DNA from: Macrostomum hystrix
Lineage: Eukaryota; Animalia; Platyhelminthes
Direction: 5' to 3'
Length of the DNA stretch: 64,000 bases
Assembly (NCBI GenBank): GCA_950097015.1
Contig: CATNEN010000010.1
Location: 1,054,001 to 1,118,000 of the forward strand
A program made the translations under genes and the position numbers. Position 1 is the first letter of the stretch. Each line of letters opens with the position of its first letter. Shown here piece by piece: positions 19,149-32,392 of this stretch. Below the pieces are notes generated by a model. The model worked only from the letters and a program-made list of their open reading frames with translations, was not told where the DNA came from and ran no database searches.

Positions 19149-20740
19149 TTAAACTATAATTAGACTTCGGAATTAGACCACAGAATGAGACCAATTCCCG
19201 TTGATTATTGTAATACTATAGCATGGTTTCCGAGGTCTTTAATGTCATGGCCGAGGGCGCGAAGCGCTTCAATCTGCTACATATTGAATACGGAGACATA
19301 GTTGGACTGACGAAGGACGAGATAGCCGCACGCATGGAAGCTGACAACGCTCTATTTGCTCTAGAAATGGACGCAGATAGAATAGAAGAGATGGCGGCTG
19401 CATTCGCTGCGAGAATTGATGATAATACGCTTGCCGAACTGCTAGATGCAAAAGAGCCTCGAAACGAAGATAACGAGGCTCTAATGCAAGATCTTGATTT
19501 GGTTGAGAAAAAAACTGAACCACCAAGTGCGAGTCTGCAAGAAAAATGGGCTCTGGAAAAAATTTATTCGACCATGGAGTCCTTTCAACTTGAAGTCTAC
19601 ATTAAGACCTGCATGCACAGAGGAGCGATTGGCGGCCTGTATCCGGATTGCGTATGGAACTATCAAGCGCTCTGACGGTGGGTACTATGCACCTGCTACT
19701 TTGCGCTGTTTCCGGGCCGGTTTGTATCGCTGGCTGCTTCGGAGGCGTGGAGTGGATATCATATCTAACCAGCTGTTCATATCTAAAGCGAACAATATGT
19801 TAAAAGTTGCTGCTAAACTGTTTCTGGAGAACGGCGGAGAAGTAAAGAGATTCAGCTCCATAGAAGACGATGATCTAGCTAAGCTTCGAAAGTATTTCGA
19901 TCCGAGCACACCAGCAAAGTTACAGCATGAGTTCTATTACAATATGATGACTCATTTCGGGCTGCGTGCGAGAGATTGGCTTCGACGCCTAACAGTTGAG
20001 TCGTTCGAAGAGATTATCACTGCATCTGGGCGAGAGGCCATCAAGTTGCGGCCGATGGCTACAAAGACTGATGGAGGACACTTGGAAAATGCTGCAAAAA
20101 TACTAAACAGGTGCTGATGGTTTCTACCGGCTTACCTGACTGCCCTGTGGGCTGCTTCAATGACTACATGGAAAGGATCGCGAATGCTAAGAACCGAGAA
20201 GGTGTCGTGAACAGCATCGTCTCATTCGGCCGAGGGCTAAGCCTAACGCAGACTCGTGGTATTTTGCCAAGCAGCCGGTTGGACACAATACGCTGGGATC
20301 AATGATGCAGACAATATCTGAGAAGGCTGGACTGTCTAGAAAGTATGCGCCTCATTGCATCAGAGCAACGGTCGTGACGGAGCTGCACAACGCCGGTTTT
20401 TCGCTGGAAGACGTCGGCCATGTGACGGGACATCGTTCGGTTGTGTCAACCCAGCGGTACATAAGATACTCAAAGAAGAAGGAGTCCCAACTGGCATGCG
20501 TTTCGGATGCATTAAGTCGGGCTGGATGTGAACATAAAGTAAGTTCAGCTTCAACCACCAATCTCTCAACTTGCAGTTCTAGTTCTAGTGGCGGCTTTAG
20601 TGGTACGTTCACCGGCTGCACATTCAACATTTTTCATAAGTGACATTTTGATATTTTGCATGACATTTACGGAAAATAACCTGTTTTACTTGTTAGAAAT
20701 AATGTCATTTGTTTTCAATATAGACTTGCTTATAGCTTAA
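19149..20740 (+). mobile_element. Crypton-type DNA transposon encoding a tyrosine recombinase (DUF3504-like), ORF split by ~3 frameshifts
   Basis: ORFs 19223-19675, 19494-20117, 20111-20305 and 20302-20643 together give DGGYYAPATLRCFRAGLYRWL, FGLR, ATKT, CPVGCF, HCIRAT, TGH and QRY, i.e. the R-K-HxxR-H-Y catalytic set. Candidate ends are TTAAACTATAA (19149-19159) and TTATAGCTTAA (20730-20740), a 10/11 inverted repeat. Confidence 0.85.
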
Positions 20741-21611
20741 CGACCATAGACATTTTGAGTTTAACCCATTTTTTAGATTTCCCTAGGGAAATCCCAGGGA
20801 CGCGAAAGACCGCTTTTATCGTACTACAATGAGCTGCTTAACGTGCTAAACCTATATTTTTATTATACTAATATCTGGAATAGACGATGAAATCTGCGTC
20901 CATCAAGAAATCCCTCCTAAATTATTTGCATTTTAAGAGATCCTTGTCTAAAGACGCAGTGATCTTTATTAAATACGAGCTTCAAAGTTCTTTCTCATTT
21001 CCGAAATTCCAAGAATAATGCCTCACTGGGACAGTAGTTCGTATTGAGCTCGATAGCAATTCATTTGGCAAGTTATTATAGGAAATAGCCAAGGAGTTCT
21101 AAAGATGCTATCTCCAGAACTCCTTGGATTTAGCTAACACTTATTAGGAACGCAAATTACGAGTAGGAGAAAGTGAATAAAGCCGATCTGAAAATAGTCT
21201 GAGAACTGTTTCCTTAAACATAAAGTAGCCAATTGTCACAGCAAAAACTGCTGTCAACGCACAATTCTGTGCTCATTGCCATTCTCGTGTATTTAAATTG
21301 CAATAAATTAATGGTTCTTTCGCGATTTGGTAAATATAAAAAAGTTAACATTTGATGTATTGCATTTATTTCACGTATCATTAAAGGCTTCGTAGCTATT
21401 GCTACTGTTCTCCTGCCAAGGTATTTGTTGGAAGCCTTATCCCCAATAATTTATACTGTAGCTTGTCGGACAGCCTGAATAAAAATTGAAGCAAAGACAT
21501 AAAAAGAGTTTAAATGATTAACAATTAAGCGTAAGGAATTAGGTTGAAAGCTCGTCAACCTGTTCACTGCATGTCCTAATCGCATTGTTATGACGCGAAA
21601 GACAGCTCAGC

Positions 21612-24600
21612 TCATTGTCTTTCACCCAGAGCGGCCTGCAGCTCCTTAGTTGTAGCCTCGAAGATTATGCTGGTCTCTTCAACGAACTCAACAGCCATGT
21701 GCGCAATCTCCACTGCACAGCTGGAATCGCAGCCTAGAGCTTCGGTGATTTTCGGGACAAAATTCGCCAAGGGCTCTTGGTTGCGGTTATCGTGCTTGAC
21801 ACAGTTGACCACATCCTGCCAGGCCACGAGCCACCCAAACGGTTTCTGGTCGCGAAATACTTTGCACTCGCGAATGCTCAGCAGATCTCTGACTGCTGCG
21901 ACTCGTTGCTGAAGCTCTTCAGCAACGCATTTCTTTGTCTGAAGTGTCTTTTCCAGCTTGACTTTAATCAGTCTTGCTCGTTCTTCGTGTGATTTTCCAT
22001 TTAGAGCAGATATCATCACTTTATCATCACAATTCTTCACAAAATTGAAGCCATATGGAAAGTATCTCAAGTCAATCCCCTTTTCAAAACATTCACCTCC
22101 CACAGAATTAATCAACTTTGACCACAAGCCATCCATGCAATTCTTGGCCTCCACTAGAGTCTGAATGATGGCTTTGTTTCTATCTTCTTCATGGTCTTGT
22201 CCTTGCTGTTCAAGGTGCTGCAGGTTCAGCGTGCATTTTTGCAGTTCTGTACTGTTTTGCCACTGGTGGTTGCACTTAAAATGGCTTTCGCCTGAAGCAA
22301 TGTGGATCAGGGCATGCAACTCATATGATTGCTTGCTATGCAGCCAAGGTACAGTCTGCACCGTCTGATCTGCATCTGCCGGAGAGTACTTTTGCTGAAT
22401 GACTTCAAGCGGGCGCCGCACTCTGTGCGACAGCCGGTCCTCCAGCAACTGCACGACTGGCTGACACGCCTCTGGACTTTTAAGTCGGATAGCCTCGACG
22501 ATGAGCTTTTCCTTTTCCACTCCATCAGTCAATTCGGCTTGCTTGAGCAGTGCTGAAGACAACAGCGAGCTTCTGCGATCATGGTTGAGAGACAGCTTGC
22601 GAAAGTTGTCCACTGCTGATTTGAACTCTTGACTGCTCATGTGCAGCAGGCCAAGGTGCTCAAACACAAGCTGGTGATTTGTGCCGTCACTGCTTAAAGC
22701 CCTCTGATAGAGATCAGAGATTGATTTTCGTTCTTCTGCAGGAATAGTGTAAGAGTGAAGCAGGTGTTGTCGGAACCAGGCCTCCATTTCTGGCCTCTCA
22801 CTCTTTGAGCGAACACTTTTAAGAGCCTTCCACCTTTGTTCACACTGCATAACAGCCAGAACCATGATCTCAAATCCAGAATCTATATTTCTAGCTTCGC
22901 AACAAATAAAGAAGCCCTTCAAACATTTGCTCACAGCTGCATGCCTCGGGAAATCTCGGTATTTATTTGCCATATTATCAAACTCATTAAGTATAAGTTC
23001 CTCACTGAACTTCTTTGGTCTCTCCACTCGGAACTGCTGAAGACTTACATCAACCCAGAAGTGTCCAGGCTCATAGGAAACTTTCTGTGCTCGGAGCAGT
23101 AGCCTTTCGTACTCATCTTCCGCTTTCTCTCGACTTAATTCTTCGATCGGTCTTTTCAGTGTTTGCTTCGCTAAACGAAAAAGTAGTTCTGAGTTTTGAG
23201 TACGAGGCGCCAGACCTCGCATTATTTCGTAAAGCTCAGATGAATCCGATGTGTCTCTGAGAATTCGAAAGACCTTCTCGCAAGTTAGAGTGATTCGATA
23301 ATACTGCTCCTGGATTTCTGCACTGAAATCCCTCACTGCGTGAATTGTTTCATGGGCGAATTTTCTGCACATCTCTTTCAGATCTCGATTGCACAGAATA
23401 GCCTCGGCATAGTTGATCAGGAACTGGAAGTAGTAAGGCTTTATTTTTGGGAATCGGTTTGGCAATCCCATTTGATTTGCTAGCTCGAGACTTCGCTCCC
23501 ACAGCAGCAGCTCCTTGGAGTCAGCGGGAGCTCTGTTATTCTTGTGCCGACGCAATCGTGAACGAATGTATGCCAGCCGATAGACGCACAGAAAATTGTC
23601 TGGTTGAATGCTTAGGCTTATCATTGCGGCTTCCTCCGCTTCTTTGTACTTGTTGATTCCTTGGTGAAAGAAGGCCAGCGCCTTCATGTGGAACGCGTTG
23701 GCTCTGACTTCGATTCGCGGAGCGTCGCTTCGTTCGTTCCACGCCTCCGCGAGGGCTTTAACACGCTCAGCAAAGTTTGGTGACCTTTTATTCTGCTGCT
23801 CTTCGAGGACTAAAGATATTGCCTCTAAGACAAAGTCACATTTGACTACGTGTTCACCTTCCCTCCGACCACATTCGAATGCGTCCTTCAAATGTTCCTT
23901 TGCTTTACTAAAGTCGATGAATTTCCTTCTATGAGAAGTAGCGGAGTGATATGATGCCAGTAGCCCGTGGTAAGCCGAAGCGAGCATTGGCTCCAGGCTA
24001 ATTCTCTCTGCTACTGTGTCGATCACGTCCTCCGGCAATTTATCTGAGCCTTCGTGCGCGTTCCACTTGAATGGACTCTCAGCATCCTTCAGTTGAAATT
24101 GATCAGTCGAGATTTCCTAAAATGTTTGTGTTTATATTTATGTACATGTTTGCGCGCTACTTAGGCGTTAATAAATGCGCTCTGCTCATCACTGCCGATT
24201 AAGTAAAGTTAAGACTAAAAAATGCTTACACACAGCTGAGGGTTTGAGGGCTTGATTATGTCTTCGAAACGAATTGACGGAGTGTCAGCAGCCCCAGTGA
24301 CAGGCTGTCTATCATGCTGGCCTCGCTTGTCCGCCAGCTTCGCCGCAATTCGCTCAGAACAACTGAAATTTTGGCTGAGCCAATCACTGTATTTGTTTAT
24401 GTACTGGACTATCGCGACCGCCTTCTCCTTTGAGTCGACGCTAATAAAGCCGAAAGATATTCCATTTTTTGAATGAAATGACTTTTTATTTGGTCGCGTG
24501 TCAGTCTGTCTGATGATAAAATCGATAAAATTGCGGCTGTTGTAGTAGGATTTCGGCAAGTTCCAGACGTAAACACAAGTTGGGTCCTTCTCGGCTTCCT

Positions 24601-26497
24601 GAGTTATAAAAGTTAAAGTTAAAGTCGAAGTTAAAAAAAGTAAAAAAGGGACAATTAAATTTAAATAAAAATTTTAATAACGCTCGTCAGCTGTCCACGT
24701 TTCATTGTAATTGCGATTTGTGGAACGCGTTTTTATAAATGAAAGCAAATGAAAAACGCTAAACTTATTTGCATTTTTAAAGAACTGAAAGTAGATAAAG
24801 TGCGACTTTGGGGCTGCTTGCTGATCTTGTTGTTGCTGAAAGTAGCTAAAGTGTGACTTTGGGGCTGCTTGCTGATCTTGTTGTTGCTGAAAGTAGCTAA
24901 AGTGTGACTTTGGGGCTGCTTGCTGATCTTGTTGTTGCTGAAAGTAGCTAAAGTGTGACTTTGGGGCTGCTTGCTGATCTTGTTGTTGCTGAAAGTAGCT
25001 AAAGTGTGACTTTGGGGCTGCTTGCTGATCTTGTTGTTGCTGAAAGTAGGTAAAGTGTGACTTTGGGGCTGCTTGCTGATCTTGTTGTTGCTGAAAGTAG
25101 CTAAAGTGTGACTTTAGGGGCTGCTTGCTGATCTTGTTGTTGCTGAAAGTAGCTAAAGTGTGACTTTAGGGGCTGCTTGCTGATCTTGTTGTTGCTGAAA
25201 GTAGCTAAAGTGTGACTTTAGGGGCTGCTTGCTGATCTTGTTGTTGCTGAAAGTAGGTAAAGTGTGACTTTGGGGCTGCTTGCTGATCTTGTTGTTGCTG
25301 AAAGTAGCTAAAGTGTGACTTTAGGGGCTGCTTGCTGATCTTGTTGTTGCTGAAAGTAGCTAAAGTGTGACTTTAGGGGCTGCTTGCTGATCTTGTTGTT
25401 GCTGAAAGTAGCTAAAGTGTGACTTTAGGGGCTGCTTGCTGATCTTGTTGTTGCTGAAAGTAGCTAAAGTGTGACTTTAGGGGCTGCTTGCTGATCTTGT
25501 TGTTGCTGAAAGTAGGTAAAGTGTGACTTTGGGGCTGCTTGCTGATCTTGTTGTTGCTGAAAGTAGCTAAAGTGTGACTTTAGGGGCTGCTTGCTGATCT
25601 TGTTGTTGCTGAAAGTAGGTAAAGTGTGACTTTGGGGGTGCTTGCTGATCTTGTTGTTGCTGAAAGTAGGTAAAGTGTGACTTTGGGGCTGCTTGCTGAT
25701 CTTGTTGTTGCTGAAAGTAGGTAAAGTGTGACTTTGGGGCTGCTTGCTGATCTTGTTGTTGCTGAAAGTAGGTAAAGTGTGACTTTGGGGCTGCTTGCTG
25801 ATCTTGTTGTTGCTGAAAGTAGGTAAAGTGTGACTTTGGGGCTGAATATTTTATTTGAGTGTTTTATAATTTCATACTTTTTATCTGTGGCTCAAGCACA
25901 AGCTACAACAGAAATCCGAAGCTCACCAATGCCATTTCTACTTGGAACTTGGAGCTCAGTTTCTGCAAAGCCATGCAAGCATCTTGCTCAGAATGAAGCT
26001 GGACAAAACCGAGGCCTGGAATTTGGTATAATTTAAAATAAAATCATTTTCAACAAGTTTAAAAACTGATGTGCTCGATTCTAAACAGTAGAATCGAATA
26101 AATGAACTGTGATAAAAGCTTCTCGTACGTGAATTCATTCTACATGAAGTTGCTAAATCCATCCATTCAAAGCCAGGTTATTTTTTACTGCAGCCTTCTT
26201 TCTAGGCTGGCCGATCGTCTCAGCGGCCATAGTACTTGAGCACACAGCCTAACTCAAAAACTTTAAACAGACAATTATCACAGTAGCCAAAAGCAAACCT
26301 TTGCACCGGCCGGTCTGCTTGTCAAACACGGCTTGGGTGTAGACGATGGCTGTATCAGAAACTCCAACATCCAGCATCTGCTGCCGAATGGTGCGATCGT
26401 TGTCATAAGGAGACAAACCCCGAATGAAAAGGCAAGTCTTGCTTAAGCACCTATTCTTGTGGCAACTTCTGGCTGTCTCTCCATTTGAGGGCAGCAT
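21612..26497 (-). CDS. Spliced ~1053-aa protein: RRM + RRM + TPR/IFIT-like superhelix + C-terminal HEPN-like domain
   Basis: Exons 26497-26299, 26015-25927, 24598-24230 and 24116-21612 join in frame through GT-AG junctions. RRM1 is CLFIRGL..FDKQTGRCK|GLGFVQL and RRM2 is CVYVWNLP..GISFGFISV. TPR-like helices include KALAFFHQGINKYKEAEEAAMISLSIQPDN and EHLGLLHMSSQEFKSAVDNF. The start codon is not certain. Confidence 0.82.
24790..25845. repeat. 51/52-bp satellite, ~20 copies, in intron 2 of the RRM-TPR gene
   Basis: Unit TGCTGAAAGTAGCTAAAGTGTGACTTT(A)GGGGCTGCTTGCTGATCTTGTTGT. Confidence 0.97.
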
Positions 26498-27399
26498 TCT
26501 GCAGTGCACTGCAGCTTTCAGTCTGTTTTGAAAGAAACAAGAGCAGACGCAAATGTGAGCTGATAAGCGATTGCTTACGAGCAAGAGTTAAAATACGAGT
26601 ATTTATATGCCTCGCCTTATCAGCTAGGAATAGCATAAGCTTAGTCTGTTTCTTGCACATTCTTTCCTACGCTTGCGCCTGTGCGAACTGTGTATCTACG
26701 TAGAGTGTTGGGCCGTCTGTCGCCCCACCCTTACTTTCAGCCTGGAGATCGTGTGCGCTGTGCGCCTCTCGCTTGCACTCTCTCCCCTCTCTCCCTTGGA
26801 TTCCACATTTCCATGGTGACAGGTCACAGAGTTTTTACGAGTACTTGTCCCACTTTCTGCTACAACTCTGTACTTTACATTGTTAAATATAATTGAAAGT
26901 ATTGCCAACCAGACCTCTCCTCACGTTCGTTTGTTCCCTCCCCGCTCGCCCTGCGAGCAAGGCCAGGTCTGAGCCTCAACTGGGCTGCAAGTAAGAACGC
27001 AGCCAAGAAAAAATGCTTGGTGACTCCAAGGTCTTCAAAGCTGACAGGCAAAAGGAAACATCAAAAACATCAATTGTTTCACTTTGTGAACGGCTGGTCA
27101 GAAATGCACGCCGAGCAAAAGAACGTGAGAATTGTCTTCGTGAGAACATGAGAACGTGAGAAAGAACGAACGAAACTCTCGTTCCCCAAAATTATTTGCA
27201 TTCTTTGGCGAATTCCAGAAATAGCGCGACAGAAATTAAGTACTAAAATTCTATTTTCGTATATGACGCGCTAGGTCCCAAGCACAGAAAATAGCAAAAA
27301 AGTTTCTTCCTGTCTGGAAATTTTTATTACGAGCGTATCAATATACAAATATTCAATGCGTAAAATTTAGTCTAATTTACTATGTTAATGAGAAATGAG

Positions 27400-30300
27400 T
27401 TAAATGACGCGAAATATGAGCAGGCCAAGAAAGCTTCCGGCATTATCATCCCGAGCGCCTAACACTCTGAGTTCGCTTCCGGATGGCCCAGTCCTAGCTT
27501 TGAATTTGAACCCGGAGCACGACCTCCGATGTACTGACTGGCCCTGGCATTCCACCATCACGGCCCTGAGGCTCGGAGAGCCCAGCCTGAACTTAATTTC
27601 GCTGTTCGCTCGCAGCTCGCCGTCTCTTGGACATTTGAGCACTACTTGCTCCACCAGCGACCGGTTGAGGATTTCCGGAAACGGCCTCCTTTGCCGCAGC
27701 GGACTGCTGCAAACGATGAGGAAGTTTGCGAACTCCGCGATAGTATCGCTGCCAGACCCGACGTCCTTACAGAAAAGAATGAGCCTGTGGAATCCTCGTC
27801 GATGCATCCTCACCCTGACTTTCAGAGTCTGCTCAACCATCTCAAGGAGAGCAAAGCACTTCTGAGGTTCGCTGTCTTCGGCAGACTGCAACTGCGCGGA
27901 TGCACAGATAAGCTGCTGAGCTGGCAGCTTCAGTTTGATCTCGCCAACCCTCGCTTTAAAGTAGAAAGCTTGGCTTCGCAAGTCTTTTGAGAAGCCGCAC
28001 CGCTCAGGACTACGGATGATGCCATAGAAGCCATCGAAATCTGGAAATGGATCCAGCCTCGCATTCCTCGATGATCTTAACTCATAAGATGCCAGCAGGT
28101 CTAATGTCATTGCTGTAATATCTGTTGTGCCAAACACCTGCAGTGTCCAGGTTATTCCACAGCTCGGCGGTCTGGCGGTCACTGTGGCCTTATTAGTTGC
28201 GTGGTTTAGAACGGTGGCTATGTATTTTCCTGAACTGACCTTCTCCCCAGTCCTCGGGTTCACAAAAACAGCACGGAAATTTGTTAAAGGCAACCCAAGT
28301 CCTTTAAATTTTAGCACAGCCTCGTCACGCACGCCAATAAACCCGTCGGGGCTGAACCTCCAGTCCACTCGATGCTTCCAACAGTTTGCGATATCTGGAA
28401 ACGGCCTAGGAGCAGGTAGCGGTCGGCTGCAATCGATGAGGTAGTTAGCCAGTGCGGGAATCCTCTCCGCTCGGCTGTCCTCCTTGTTCGCGCAGAAAAG
28501 AGTCAATCGGTAGAAGCCCATTCGGTGCAGTCTCAAGCTAATTGTCAGTTCCTGCTCCTGCTGTTCGAGCAGGCAGAACTTGCTCCCATCAAGCTCTTCA
28601 TCCTCCGCGAATCGCAGACTCACTGAGGCGTTCAATGGCCCATGGGTTTTGAACTTAAGCTGCATCTCGCTGCCATCATACTTCAGCCGGAATCCAGGCC
28701 TGTTGCAAAATTTCTTGGTGAAGCCGCAACTTTGAGGATCTCTTTGTAGGCCGTAGAAGGCACCGAAGTTCGGGAATTTCTTCAATCTAGTTGTCCTCTT
28801 TGCAAGAATTTGGTAAGAGACCAAACCGCGAGACGCAAGAGTGCCATCAGTACTGCCGTAGATTCGAAGCTCCCAGAAGCTGCCCACAGCTGGTGGTCGG
28901 GCGGTAACGGTTGCTTCGTTTTTTCGGCGGTCTAGAACAGTCGCTACGTGGATTGCGCTGTCGACTTTTACCTGTGTATCAGGATTAAAAAAGCTGGCAG
29001 AGAAATTTGTCAGAGGATCTCCGCGTCCCTTGAACTTCATAGTTACTTCCGTGTCAACCTTAACCAAAGCGTTCTTGTGCGACACAAGCTTAACGTCGCA
29101 GTCAAAACAGCTCTCCTGCCTTCTGACGCGCCGGTGAAATGTTGCCAAGTCGATCGGTCTCGGGAGCATCTGCCACCTCTTGCTCTCCACCATGTTTGAG
29201 TTGACGTAGGGAAAATGGTCCTCGATGAAGACATTGGGATCGGGAAGGAAGTAGAAGTCAGTCTCTTGCTTGACAAACTGATTGTCAATTGCATGACCAG
29301 CGCCACAAGTACAGTCCATGAACTTCCAGGTGCCGTTGAGCTTCACTGCATTCCACGCGTGATTTGGGCACGGCTCCGCGGTCAGCGCTCTGACAGGGTT
29401 ATACCCCACACCTTTGCAGATGCCTGTGATTAGCTTGTGCTCGATCGCCATTAGGCTGTTGGAGTGAACAGGGTGATAGCAGGTTTGATTAATTAGTACA
29501 TAGGAAATGTTGAGAAGGAAGAGTTCGAATTGTTTTTTGCATATCATTTAAAGTAAACAATAACACGTTGAAATTAACAATAGCATGTTGTGACTATTCA
29601 AGTCAACACGATCTATTTAGTCCTGGAAGCATTCCGGACAACCAGAAAAGAAAAGAAAAGCTTGACTGCCTCAGCGCTGCTGCTGTTTGGCGAGAGGCAG
29701 TCGGCGCAGTGGTTGCTGTACAGGAGGCACCGAGGCGTTGATCGTCGGCTTGTGCACAGCCCCCTTGCAGAGACCGATTGATCCACTGAAGACTGCTGGG
29801 AACTCGCTCGCGATGTCGACGCTGCCGATTTTCATGCCGTCGTCTGGCGGCTGCAAGCTGACTCGAAACCCGAGCTTCTCCATCAGATCGCGGCCAACGA
29901 TGTTCTCGCCGGACTTTGTGATGTGGAAGTCGTGCTGCAGCTGCAGAGTGCCGTACCTGACGACGATCGCCGCGACACCAGCGAGGGCAATTTGCTTCCC
30001 GCCGTACGCTCGCAGCTGCACGGATGACGACCGTAGCGCAGGTTGCCTAGACTCCTGGCAGTGTCCTCGTTGAGCAAAGACACCTTGGCTCCGCAGTCGA
30101 CCATCAGGCTGACGATCTCCTGGCTCTGGCCCAGCTGGAGCTGAACCCGAATCTCGTCGCTGCCGTGCACCGCGTAAATAGTGATCGATTCCTCTGCACT
30201 GACTTGCAGGGCTTTGCTCCGACAGAACCGGCTGAAGTGGTTGGATTTGCCGCAGTTATTGCACTTCTTGCCGTGCGCCGGGCACTTAGCCTTAGCGTCA

Positions 30301-32392
30301 TGGCTCCTGCCGCATCGCTGACAGAGCCCTCTTGCTGCGGCTTCTTGTTGAATTGCGCGCTGCTTTGGACATGCTGCCTCGGCGCCTCTCGCACTGCCTG
30401 GACGGTTCCGGGCATGCTGGCCGCCGCCATTGCCTTGCTGCCAGCAGCCGCATTCTCGATAGTGCTCGCGATGACGATCGCTTGCTCCAGCGTTAGCCTG
30501 GCGGCGTCCTCCGTCAGTAGGCGTTCGCGGATCCGGGAACTGCTGGTTTTCTCGGCTAATTGGTCGCGAATCATTTCGTCTGCCATGCCTCCGTAGTTAC
30601 AGGTGGCTGCCAGCTCCCGCAGAGCTGCGACGAACGTGGCGGCGTTCTCTCCCGGCAGCTGCTGTCGCTCCCGGAATCTATGCCGCGCAAGCATCACGTT
30701 CAGCCTGTCGCCGAATACCGTCGTCAGCTGATTGCGAGTCTCCCAGTAGGATTGGCCATCGATGATTGCGTTTCGTGCTCTAGCGATACGCTGCCCTTCA
30801 AAGCCCAAGAGATGCAGAAGTATGTTCTGACACAACGTTGCCCGTCGCGCTGCCTCCTCTGTCGGAGCTTCCTCCCCCACTGGTTGTGGTGGGCGACTTG
30901 TGCAGCCTAGCAATGGAAGTCGAATCCATCGAGCCATCTATTCCAGGGGACCGTCGGAAATCCGCTGCATGGCAGAAACGGTGCCGGTGGGCTTACGTTT
31001 AGGTTGAGGGCCATCCTCGTCGCCAGTTGTTGTACTATTCAAGTCAACACGATCTATTTAGTCCTGGAAGCATTCCGGACAACCAGAAAAGAAAAGAAAA
31101 GCATTGACTGCCTCAGCGCAGCACGTGCTTTTATATTTGTCAAAACCGAAAAAACCCATCGATCGATAAGTTTCAAACACTCGGTTTAATATTAAATATA
31201 ACTCGCACTTACTGACGCGTTTACTAATAGTAGCACGCACGCAACGCAAAACCAATGCACCCAAAAATGGTGGCCCAGAAAAGGGCCGTTTTAGCAAGTC
31301 ACTACACAACATAAAGTATGACAGCAAACACGGCTACTTACTCGCACAGACGGCCTGCAAGAGCTGCGCATCCCGCAACGTAGCCGAACTCGGCGCCAAG
31401 TGTGGCCTCTGTTCCAGCTGGGAAAACCAATCTACTCTGATAGTTCCGCTCAATTCTGTAACTAAAAGTGTTCGTGATTGTCTGTAATATGTGAGACTGA
31501 GATTTTATATGGCCTAATGGCAAAATTAAATATTTCGATGTCTAGGTAGATACTGACGTTATGTTTGCGGTGACCCATTTGTAGATGGCACGAACTTTCT
31601 CCAAGTCGCTGCTGGCAGCCGAGGCCAGGTACTCAGCCAAAGACTTCAGCGATTGGATGGCAGCTGGTGGAGCCTGTGTGATGAAATGTATACTGATGAC
31701 ATTTTTAAGATGCTCACTAGCACTATATATTTTCTTGAAACTTCATATTTTAGCCAGGGTATTTTGAATCGATCAGCAATAGCTCTCAAAAACTATATGT
31801 AGTTTTCTCAAACATCTCATAAAGTAGCATCCCTATAAGACTGCAGAAAGATTAAAAAACTTTGTCAAGTCTTAAATTCACACACCCTTAGGGCGTGATC
31901 GTCAATCCGTTTTAGAGCTGACCAGTCTCGCTTTCGAGCCGCTCGGTGCTTGCTGGCGACGTTCTGAAACTCCGAGGGGCGTGTTTTTTAGAACAAGAGT
32001 GTATTTAAAATTTTCCTATTTCTAGTTATTAAGTCTGGAGCACTTACTCGGCAAATTCCACAGCCTTGGCAAACTCCACAGTCTCGGCAAACTCCACAGT
32101 CTCGGCAAACTCCACAGTCTCGGCAAACTCCACAGTCTCGGCAAACTCCACAGACTCGGCAAACTCCACAGTCTCGGCAAATTCCACAGCCTTGGCAAAC
32201 TCCACAGTCTCGGCAAACTCCACAGTCTCGGCAAACTCCACAGTCTCGGCAAATTCCACAGCCTTGGCAAACTCCACAGTCTCGGCAAACTCCACAGACT
32301 CGACAAGCTCCACAGTCTCGGCAAAGTCCACAGTCTCGGCAATGTCCACAGTCTCGGCAAAGTCCACAGTCTCGGCTCGCTCCACAGCCCAT
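27400..32392 (-). CDS. KY-like paralog D (~904 aa): Cys-rich N-terminal repeat, catalytic Cys replaced by Val, duplicated Ig-like unit
   Basis: Exons 32392-32048 (MGCGAS(RDCGxC)n), 31963-31886 (DWSALKRIDDHALR), 31673-31558 (116 nt, SDLEKVRAIYKWVTANI), 31461-31342 (120 nt, FGYVAGCAALAGRLC) and 29455-27400 (NHAWNAVKL, FMDCTCGAG). The frame is continuous. Confidence 0.88.
29586..31120 (-). mobile_element. Internally deleted Ty3/Gypsy LTR retrotransposon in an intron of paralog D (gag, protease, start of RT region; ~92-bp LTR-like direct repeats)
   Basis: Direct repeats at 29586-29677 and 31028-31120. PBS TGGCGACGAGGATGG at 31025-31011. Gag-like ORF 30937-30104 (ARHRFRERQQLPGE..FVAALRELAATCNYG..IRDQL), protease LMVDCGAKVSLL and pre-RT PPVQQPLRRLP. 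No RT core, RNase H or integrase. Confidence 0.9.
32050..32385 (-). repeat. 18-bp coding tandem repeat (GCCGAGACTGTGGAGTTT; CRDCGV x ~18) forming exon 1 of paralog D
   Basis: Lies between the ATG at 32392 and an in-phase GTAAGT donor at 32047. Confidence 0.85.

Follow-up and report, generated by a model that had tools for sequence, protein, structure and literature searches.

A Macrostomum hystrix gene encoding two RRM domains, an IFIT-like TPR core and a family-specific helical C-terminal domain

Introduction

According to Liu et al. (2013; PMC3688568), IFIT proteins occur in jawed vertebrates only and are tied to interferon. A CHFTW pentapeptide is reported to be invariant in these proteins (PMC11462223). 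In the HEPN superfamily of RNases, which includes the HepT/MNT-HEPN toxins, the RNase L/Ire1 KEN domain and the HEPN domain of sacsin, an acidic residue in a long early helix is followed by a variable insert, then by a helix ending in a polar-x3-His motif, and lastly by one further helix (PMC3710099). The animal DZIP3/TTC3-type proteins combine a HEPN-type bundle with TPRs. Here, a gene of the flatworm Macrostomum hystrix is described. It lies on the minus strand of a stretch of 64,000 nucleotides (contig CATNEN010000010.1, positions 1,054,001 to 1,118,000, assembly GCA_950097015.1; hereafter the window), with its coding exons at positions 21612-26497 of that window. The architecture of its product is RRM-RRM-[IFIT-like TPR]-[family-specific helical tail].

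Gene structure and expression

On the minus strand, the list of open reading frames (ORFs) of the window holds one ORF of 808 amino acids (21612-24038) besides two short ones (24215-24559 and 26249-26584), and it does not call exon 2 in the coding frame. A first-pass annotation, made from the sequence, had proposed that these pieces belong to one gene of four exons. Splicing of 26497-26299, 26015-25927, 24598-24230 and 24116-21612 indeed gives 3162 nucleotides, that is an open frame of 1053 amino acids plus a stop codon, and the borders of all three introns are GT..AG. The exons are as follows.

26299-26531, minus strand: exon 1, made of a 5' untranslated region (UTR; 26498-26531) and of coding sequence (26497-26299, Met1 to Lys66 plus one nucleotide), with the RNP2 motif LFIRGL and a GT donor
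25927-26015, minus strand: exon 2, phase 1, which finishes RNP1 (K/GLGFVQL) and carries the second half of RRM1; joints 26015/26299 and 24598/25927 in the contigs described below
24230-24598, minus strand: exon 3, with a divergent RRM2 (about 24332-24580; VYVWNL ... ISFGFISV) and a linker
21612-24116, minus strand: exon 4, 834 codons plus stop, with the IFIT-like TPR core and the C-terminal domain (CTD)

As the annotation had pointed out, the RNP1 motif of RRM1 (K-GLGFVQL) exists only in the spliced product, where it spans the exon 1/2 junction. One codon is split 1+2 at this junction.

Transcript evidence comes from four public runs (X1-X4) of one study, with library type unrecorded. In each run, one contig of about 3.5 kb spans the four exons and precisely lacks 24117-24229, 24599-25926 and 26016-26298 (CT..AC on the plus strand). 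Because the introns are missing, these contigs look like transcript assemblies. They carry exactly the three predicted junctions and link the RRM exons to the TPR exon, as the four-exon model had anticipated. They reach at least position 21300, giving a 3' UTR of at least 310 nucleotides, and those of X2 and X3 begin at 26531. Thus, the locus is a real, spliced and expressed four-exon flatworm gene.

RRM domains and orthologues

The closest database relatives of the protein are five Macrostomum lignano proteins (P0001-P0005; 53-57% identity), whose UniRef name is 'RRM domain-containing protein'. Residues 1-260 of the gene model align collinearly with residues 15-279 of P0001 (44% identity, E 7e-61), unbroken over the three splice junctions. 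Since this alignment crosses all junctions, the fusion of the RRMs to the large helical exon is conserved between species; it is carried by two M. lignano paralogue groups. In the papers searched, the M. lignano gene identifiers had no match.

The first-pass annotation had announced two RRMs, and both are borne out, by different routes. In the orthologues, Pfam RRM_1 (PF00076) matches residues 21-91 of P0001 with 36.1 bits (cut-off 20.7), and P0004 with 29.8 bits. RRM1 of the M. hystrix gene is collinear with P0001 and presents LFIRGL (RNP2) and KGLGFVQL (RNP1) in the right order. Pfam, which was run on single exon pieces and thus on an RRM1 divided by the intron between exons 1 and 2, gave nothing significant on these pieces, including the RRM2 region in exon 3. 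When a four-sequence profile of the RRM2 region was compared with the PDB, it matched RRM domains only (cS22, RBMS1, LARP7, ELAVL1, PABP and CELF2; best E 4e-4). Judged from these profile matches, the exon 3 region is a divergent RRM.

A TPR core probably related to IFITs

The first part of exon 4 encodes the core.

22392-24116, minus strand: IFIT-like helical/TPR core of about 575 amino acids; its first approximately 180 residues (23574-24116) align with residues 14-183 of IFIT5
24063-24077, minus strand: SPFKW, at the place aligned with CHFTW of the paralogues and of IFITs

TPR models match the M. hystrix protein weakly (Pfam, E 0.1-0.4). In relatives, they pass or nearly pass the curated cut-off (TPR_2, 34.6 bits in the M. 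hystrix paralogue L012; 38.6 bits in P0006), and positions 431-489 of the family core profile match consensus TPR designs. These matches support the TPR part of the earlier reading. IFITs had been brought in there as an analogy, a wording to which the profiles and the CHFTW motif of the paralogues are opposed, both indicating relatedness. Against the PDB, the whole-core profile finds IFIT5 at E 3.8e-8 (profile positions 5-173 on IFIT5 residues 13-182), and a profile of the first approximately 240 core residues has IFIT5 as its top match (E 2e-7). With two further paralogues in the profile, IFIT5 is found at 1e-8, IFIT1 at 1.7e-4 to 2e-3 and IFIT3 at 0.46. Each of these alignments begins at the N-terminus and runs collinearly, and no natural family apart from the IFITs reaches a better score. 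A search with the M. hystrix core using a protein language model (ESM) gave ten clusters, all of them IFIT, at 0.96. Moreover, several paralogues start with L-x-x-L-E-CHFTW. The pentapeptide is exact in L002, L012 and P0006 and becomes CHFKW or CHFMW in other members.

Several observations weigh against this relationship. The IFIT match covers subdomain I only, that is the N-terminal 170 residues or so; the RRM-bearing M. hystrix copy has SPFKW in place of CHFTW; and phmmer, a single-sequence search, found no IFIT in the PDB when run with the 485-amino acid paralogue L015. In addition, the family residue aligned with Lys150 of IFIT5, a triphosphate contact, is His or Cys, so that recognition of 5'-triphosphates may not be conserved. 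It could thus be argued that the core is an ordinary TPR scaffold whose resemblance to IFITs arose by convergence or from repeat composition. The limited extent of the match, the moderate E-values and the fact that consensus-TPR designs outscore IFIT5 against the full-core profile are in line with this explanation. The same holds for the profile of the N-terminal core, whose database search returned P0005 only and no IFIT among its best 8000 candidates; this limit may itself explain the absence and makes the search uninformative on IFITs. On the other hand, the top matches among natural proteins are IFIT5, IFIT1 and IFIT3 only, are collinear from residue 7-14 or so and include the CHFTW segment, which is not part of a TPR; the score climbed when paralogues were added; and the language-model search reached IFITs independently. 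A mere TPR scaffold is consequently very improbable in our view, and the N-terminal subdomain of the core appears, from these sequence comparisons, to be homologous to vertebrate IFITs and not merely analogous.

Comparison with IFIT1 and IFIT5 shows what is shared and what is not. The flatworm proteins have in common with them the match to IFIT5 14-183, the CHFTW motif of the paralogues, a probable TPR superhelix and a lineage-specific family expansion. They differ by a core about 100 residues longer and by the addition of a conserved CTD of about 210 amino acids. The M. hystrix gene further adds two N-terminal RRMs, and departs from IFITs at the pentapeptide and at the Lys150 position. The host also differs: the family is carried by flatworms, which are not known to have an interferon system. 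Since automatic annotation already labels some invertebrate proteins 'IFIT-like', this case is not claimed to be the first one in invertebrates. Among the papers searched for invertebrate IFIT-like proteins, only Liu et al. (2013; PMC3688568) came up.

Family members and module fusions

The first-pass annotation knew the architecture from no named protein. It is shared beyond this gene: the core and its tail belong to a family with seven loci in M. hystrix and with orthologues in M. lignano. In the 220-Mb, 42-contig M. hystrix assembly, core plus tail is found on contigs C10 (the RRM-bearing gene), C2 and C38, twice on C11 and twice on C3. A 485-amino acid paralogue without the tail (L015) is located 466 kb upstream of the RRM-bearing gene. 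What the locus at 21612-26497 adds is an RRM-bearing, multi-exon member of this family, the fusion being proven by transcripts.

Other members carry other modules. Long RGG repeats follow the tail in L012 of M. hystrix and in P0010 of M. lignano. Zinc-ribbon and CCCH-type fingers are present in P0018, P0034 and P0012, the latter bearing the UniRef name 'C3H1-type'. One family member has a weak CBM20-like N-terminus. Fusion of the IFIT-like core and tail to RNA-binding modules has thus occurred on three separate occasions, and this suggests RNA as a substrate or ligand. These repeated fusions to RRM, RGG or CCCH modules would offer a natural experiment on how a sensor may be wired to an output.

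Two pairs of family members are close neighbours in the genome. On C11, L002 (C11:4843453-4848198) and L012 (C11:4857000-4866999) are in tandem. Their N-terminal halves differ, but the sequence from around FFSTQLYELCAEV up to the tail is near-identical in both, and gene conversion between them may be the cause. On C3, L016 (C3:838000-845000) and L017 (859000-866000) form an inverted pair on opposite strands, about 20 kb apart; the 1018-amino acid ORF of L016 has CHSKW at the hallmark position.

Conservation of the C-terminal domain

The family-specific tail is encoded by the end of exon 4.

21615-22247, minus strand: family-specific all-helical CTD of about 210 amino acids
22131-22151, minus strand: EAKNCMD, a [ED]-x-[KR]-x-x-[LM]-D helix with its final D in 25 of the 26 members
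22047-22064, minus strand: YFPYGF loop motif; the family consensus is YPHAF
21867-21872, minus strand: R-E pair in the helix preceding the W..W helix (R 24/26, E 25/26)
21792-21833, minus strand: WLVAWQDVVNCVKH, with two invariant W, and with N in 24/26, K in 22/26 and H in 23/26 members; the motif sits where a helix ends
21672-21707, minus strand: IAHMAVEFVEET, start of the last helix, with A, A, E, F and E the same in all members and H in 23/26

The C-terminal motifs quoted in the first-pass annotation (EAKNCMD, YFPYGF and WLVAWQDVVNCVKH) are thus present, and N-x-x-K-H is kept in the homologues. In a search of 1.84 billion protein representatives, a profile of the last approximately 210 residues matched no more than 28 clusters (E≤0.001). 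The named ones are M. lignano proteins and the others come from eukaryotic assemblies of the ENA. The 26 members are only about 20% identical, yet D, R-E, W-x3-W, N-x-x-K-H and A-H-x-A-x-E-F-x-E-[EQ]-T are near-invariant. Two AlphaFold2 (AF2) models of the domain (predicted local distance difference test, pLDDT, 63.7 and 67.5) are all-helical. In P0009, an ENA protein of 570 amino acids, the W..W....N..KH helix occurs in two tandem copies, at residues 220 and 494, reflecting an internal duplication of the CTD.

Comparison of the C-terminal domain with HEPN RNases

The first-pass annotation had gone further and proposed that the CTD is a HEPN-like RNase domain. In the HEPN signature Rx4-6H, the arginine is five residues ahead of the histidine. 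Within the CTD family, this arginine position is occupied by V (9 of 26), D (8), I (4), G (2) and R (1), with V in the M. hystrix gene, whereas the histidine and the polar N are present in 23 and 24 of the 26 members, respectively. The sequence RNKAEH of the M. lignano orthologue was considered as a support for HEPN and rejected, its R being unique within the family. Judged on sequence, HEPN membership fails on the defining motif.

Profile searches gave no link either. When the 26 members were compared with Pfam, PADLOC and NCBIfam using hmmscan, no HEPN family was matched even at E≤10, and the matches of CTD members in PADLOC and NCBIfam were scattered single ones without a pattern. The CTD profile found only a de novo bundle among PDB sequences (E 0.023). 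The HEPN fold that had been expected from Foldseek on a CTD model did not appear, neither of the two models having a match in the PDB at E≤0.001. In the ESM Atlas, the search by shape gave unrelated families at TM≤0.38 and the search by features gave no usable match. The prediction of a CTD homodimer (score 0.00, 'no answer') is evidence neither way.

Wide structural searches are less one-sided. With the CTD models, the exhaustive search reached at best Z 6.5-6.9, which the tool rates as background for helical bundles. HEPN structures are among the matches of both wide searches, with Z 4.3-5.9. The first search gave 4nqf (Z 5.8, root-mean-square deviation (rmsd) 2.9, 117 residues aligned) and 8xdj (Z 5.5, rmsd 3.2, 116/130 aligned), along with 1jog, 7ae2, 1wwp, 1wol, LsoA and HepS, and the second one gave the sacsin HEPN domain 3o10 (Z 5.9) together with 1wwp, 1wol and again 8xdj. 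Roquin is a further HEPN entry in the structural lists. PorM, Rsd, p130Cas, the vinculin tail and designed bundles score as high as these entries. Finally, the order of elements in the AF2 model (pLDDT 67.5) fits the published HEPN description: a long early helix with an acidic residue, a variable insert, a core helix ending in N-x-x-K-H and one more helix after it (PMC3710099).

Stated in full, the HEPN proposal is that the CTD adopts the HEPN fold and works as a metal-independent RNase through N-x-x-K-H, a variant of the site, in a sensor-effector protein that would cut the RNA bound by the RRMs and the IFIT-like core, for antiviral or anti-transposon purposes. The fit of the topology, the N at the position of the HEPN polar residue that follows R with H four residues on, the recurrence of HEPN structures in two independent searches and the fusions to RNA-binding modules, which suit an RNA substrate, are all consistent with it. 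The lack of a conserved Rx4-6H arginine, the absence of HEPN model matches, the Z-scores under the noise level of the tool with non-HEPN bundles as high or higher, and the comparison by hhalign with the HEPN_DZIP3 domain of the same genome (probability 0.1%) all run counter to it. Taken as a whole, the proposal is rather unlikely. What remains of the earlier claim is the conserved N-x-x-K-H and the order of helices; the family arginine, the profile link and a structural score above noise are missing. From the models, a HEPN-like fold of the CTD is possible, with about equal chances for and against, and putative RNase activity of the domain seems unlikely.

The same balance appears when the CTD is set beside described proteins. 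In its models, it is a helical bundle of a size similar to that of HEPN superfamily RNases, with the same element order and an RNA-related context. It differs from them by a motif N-x-x-K-H devoid of a conserved arginine, by the lack of detectable sequence or profile similarity and by a structural similarity not above background. DZIP3/TTC3-type HEPN-TPR proteins also form an animal family with a HEPN-type bundle, TPRs and lineage-specific expansions. However, HEPN is N-terminal in DZIP3, and the true HEPN_DZIP3 locus of M. hystrix, on C1, has no similarity to the CTD. This locus, L013 (C1:11761431-11764820), is the sole clear HEPN_DZIP3 locus of the genome (64 bits). It does not have the histidine of Rx4-6H (…IQRELASLRS…), and by sequence the region after its HEPN domain looks like a death fold (CARD-like). 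A homologue collection aimed at a DZIP3-HEPN alignment found none.

The CTD may also be a non-catalytic bundle devoted to protein-protein interaction, oligomerisation or RNA binding. In that case, the proteins would be ribonucleoprotein (RNP) scaffolds or translation regulators, for instance in germline or secretory tissue, and not immune proteins. Fusions to RRM, RGG and CCCH modules are typical of RNP-granule proteins, many non-enzymatic bundles are among the best structural matches, and fast evolution suits reproductive proteins too. However, when charged and polar residues (D, R, E, N, K, H, H, E and E) stay near-invariant among members sharing only about 20% identity, an active or ligand site is a more usual cause than a packing interface, and the IFIT relationship suggests defence, albeit by analogy only. 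This explanation is doubtful.

Polymorphism

Among the four transcript sets, 16 coding differences were found, 14 nonsynonymous and 2 synonymous, and five of the nonsynonymous ones fall in the loop directly after N-x-x-K-H. All the transcript sets, and the other species as well, keep the reading frame open. The 14:2 ratio is indistinguishable from the neutral expectation; therefore, hardly any purifying selection is apparent in the population. Such a pattern resembles that of fast-evolving conflict or reproductive genes, and equally that of genes under relaxed constraint. In the 3' UTR, two of the four transcript sets show a 30-nucleotide deletion polymorphism at 21583, 29 nucleotides past the stop codon, and one set has a one-nucleotide insertion at 21477.

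Proposed function

The best explanation of these data, which we consider fairly probable, is an expressed RNA-binding protein, RRM-RRM-IFIT-like TPR-CTD, in which the CTD is a common output module with a polar functional site. Single-stranded RNA would be held by the IFIT-like clamp and the RRMs, possibly by its end, and the CTD would act as the output module common to the family. The near-invariant polar residues (D, R-E, N-x-x-K-H, H and E-x-x-E) would form its functional site, which could be either that of a non-canonical metal-independent RNase or a site for binding a ligand or a partner. The data establish the structure and expression of the gene, its RRM and IFIT-like relationships, the conservation of the CTD and the recurrent joining of the core to RNA-binding modules; binding of RNA ends, nuclease activity and a role in defence are putative. 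Against this proposal, it should be noted that the M. hystrix copy is off the CTD consensus at several positions (RECK for REHH, CAVE for TAYD), that the CTD model is of middling confidence (pLDDT 67.5) and that relaxed constraint would fit the polymorphism ratio too.

A stronger version holds that the CTD is a new metal-independent RNase, HEPN-derived or independent, with an N-x-x-K-H site, so that IFIT-type RNA-end sensors would be fused to their own nuclease. This version is improbable. If true, it would give a single-chain sensor-effector without vertebrate counterpart, with RRMs added in this member. As for the core, the IFIT N-terminal subdomain and the hallmark motif appear to be retained in the flatworm family, and the origin of IFIT-type RNA recognition would shift outside vertebrates. 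The tail lacks a named relative, and its invariant polar residues form a clear set; it thus constitutes a well-defined target for structure and activity work.

Upstream leader and neighbouring sequence

In X1 and X4, the contigs diverge from the genome at 26522, and the next 30 letters map uniquely to 31342-31371.

31342-31371, minus strand: end of an alternative upstream leader exon, with a GTAAGT donor, joined to 26522 through an AG acceptor at 26523-26524

This leader splice, seen in two of the four runs, uses an intron of about 4.8 kb that jumps the whole KY-like gene in between. The leader has an ATG in another frame than the main ORF; the short frame that it opens overlaps the main start codon and stops at 26451. 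The leader may correspond to a shared promoter or leader, or to read-through from another gene.

The gene that is jumped, at 27400-30937 on the minus strand, is the upstream neighbour. It is KY (kyphoscoliosis peptidase)-like, with a 715-amino acid ORF and three stretches matching Pfam Ig-like_KY (138 bits). On the other side, at 20302-20643 on the plus strand, the tyrosine recombinase model 'Phage_integrase' aligns by its C-terminal end with a 113-amino acid ORF (35.5 bits). This ORF is probably a piece of a mobile element of the Crypton or DIRS type, located just downstream of the RRM-IFIT-like gene.

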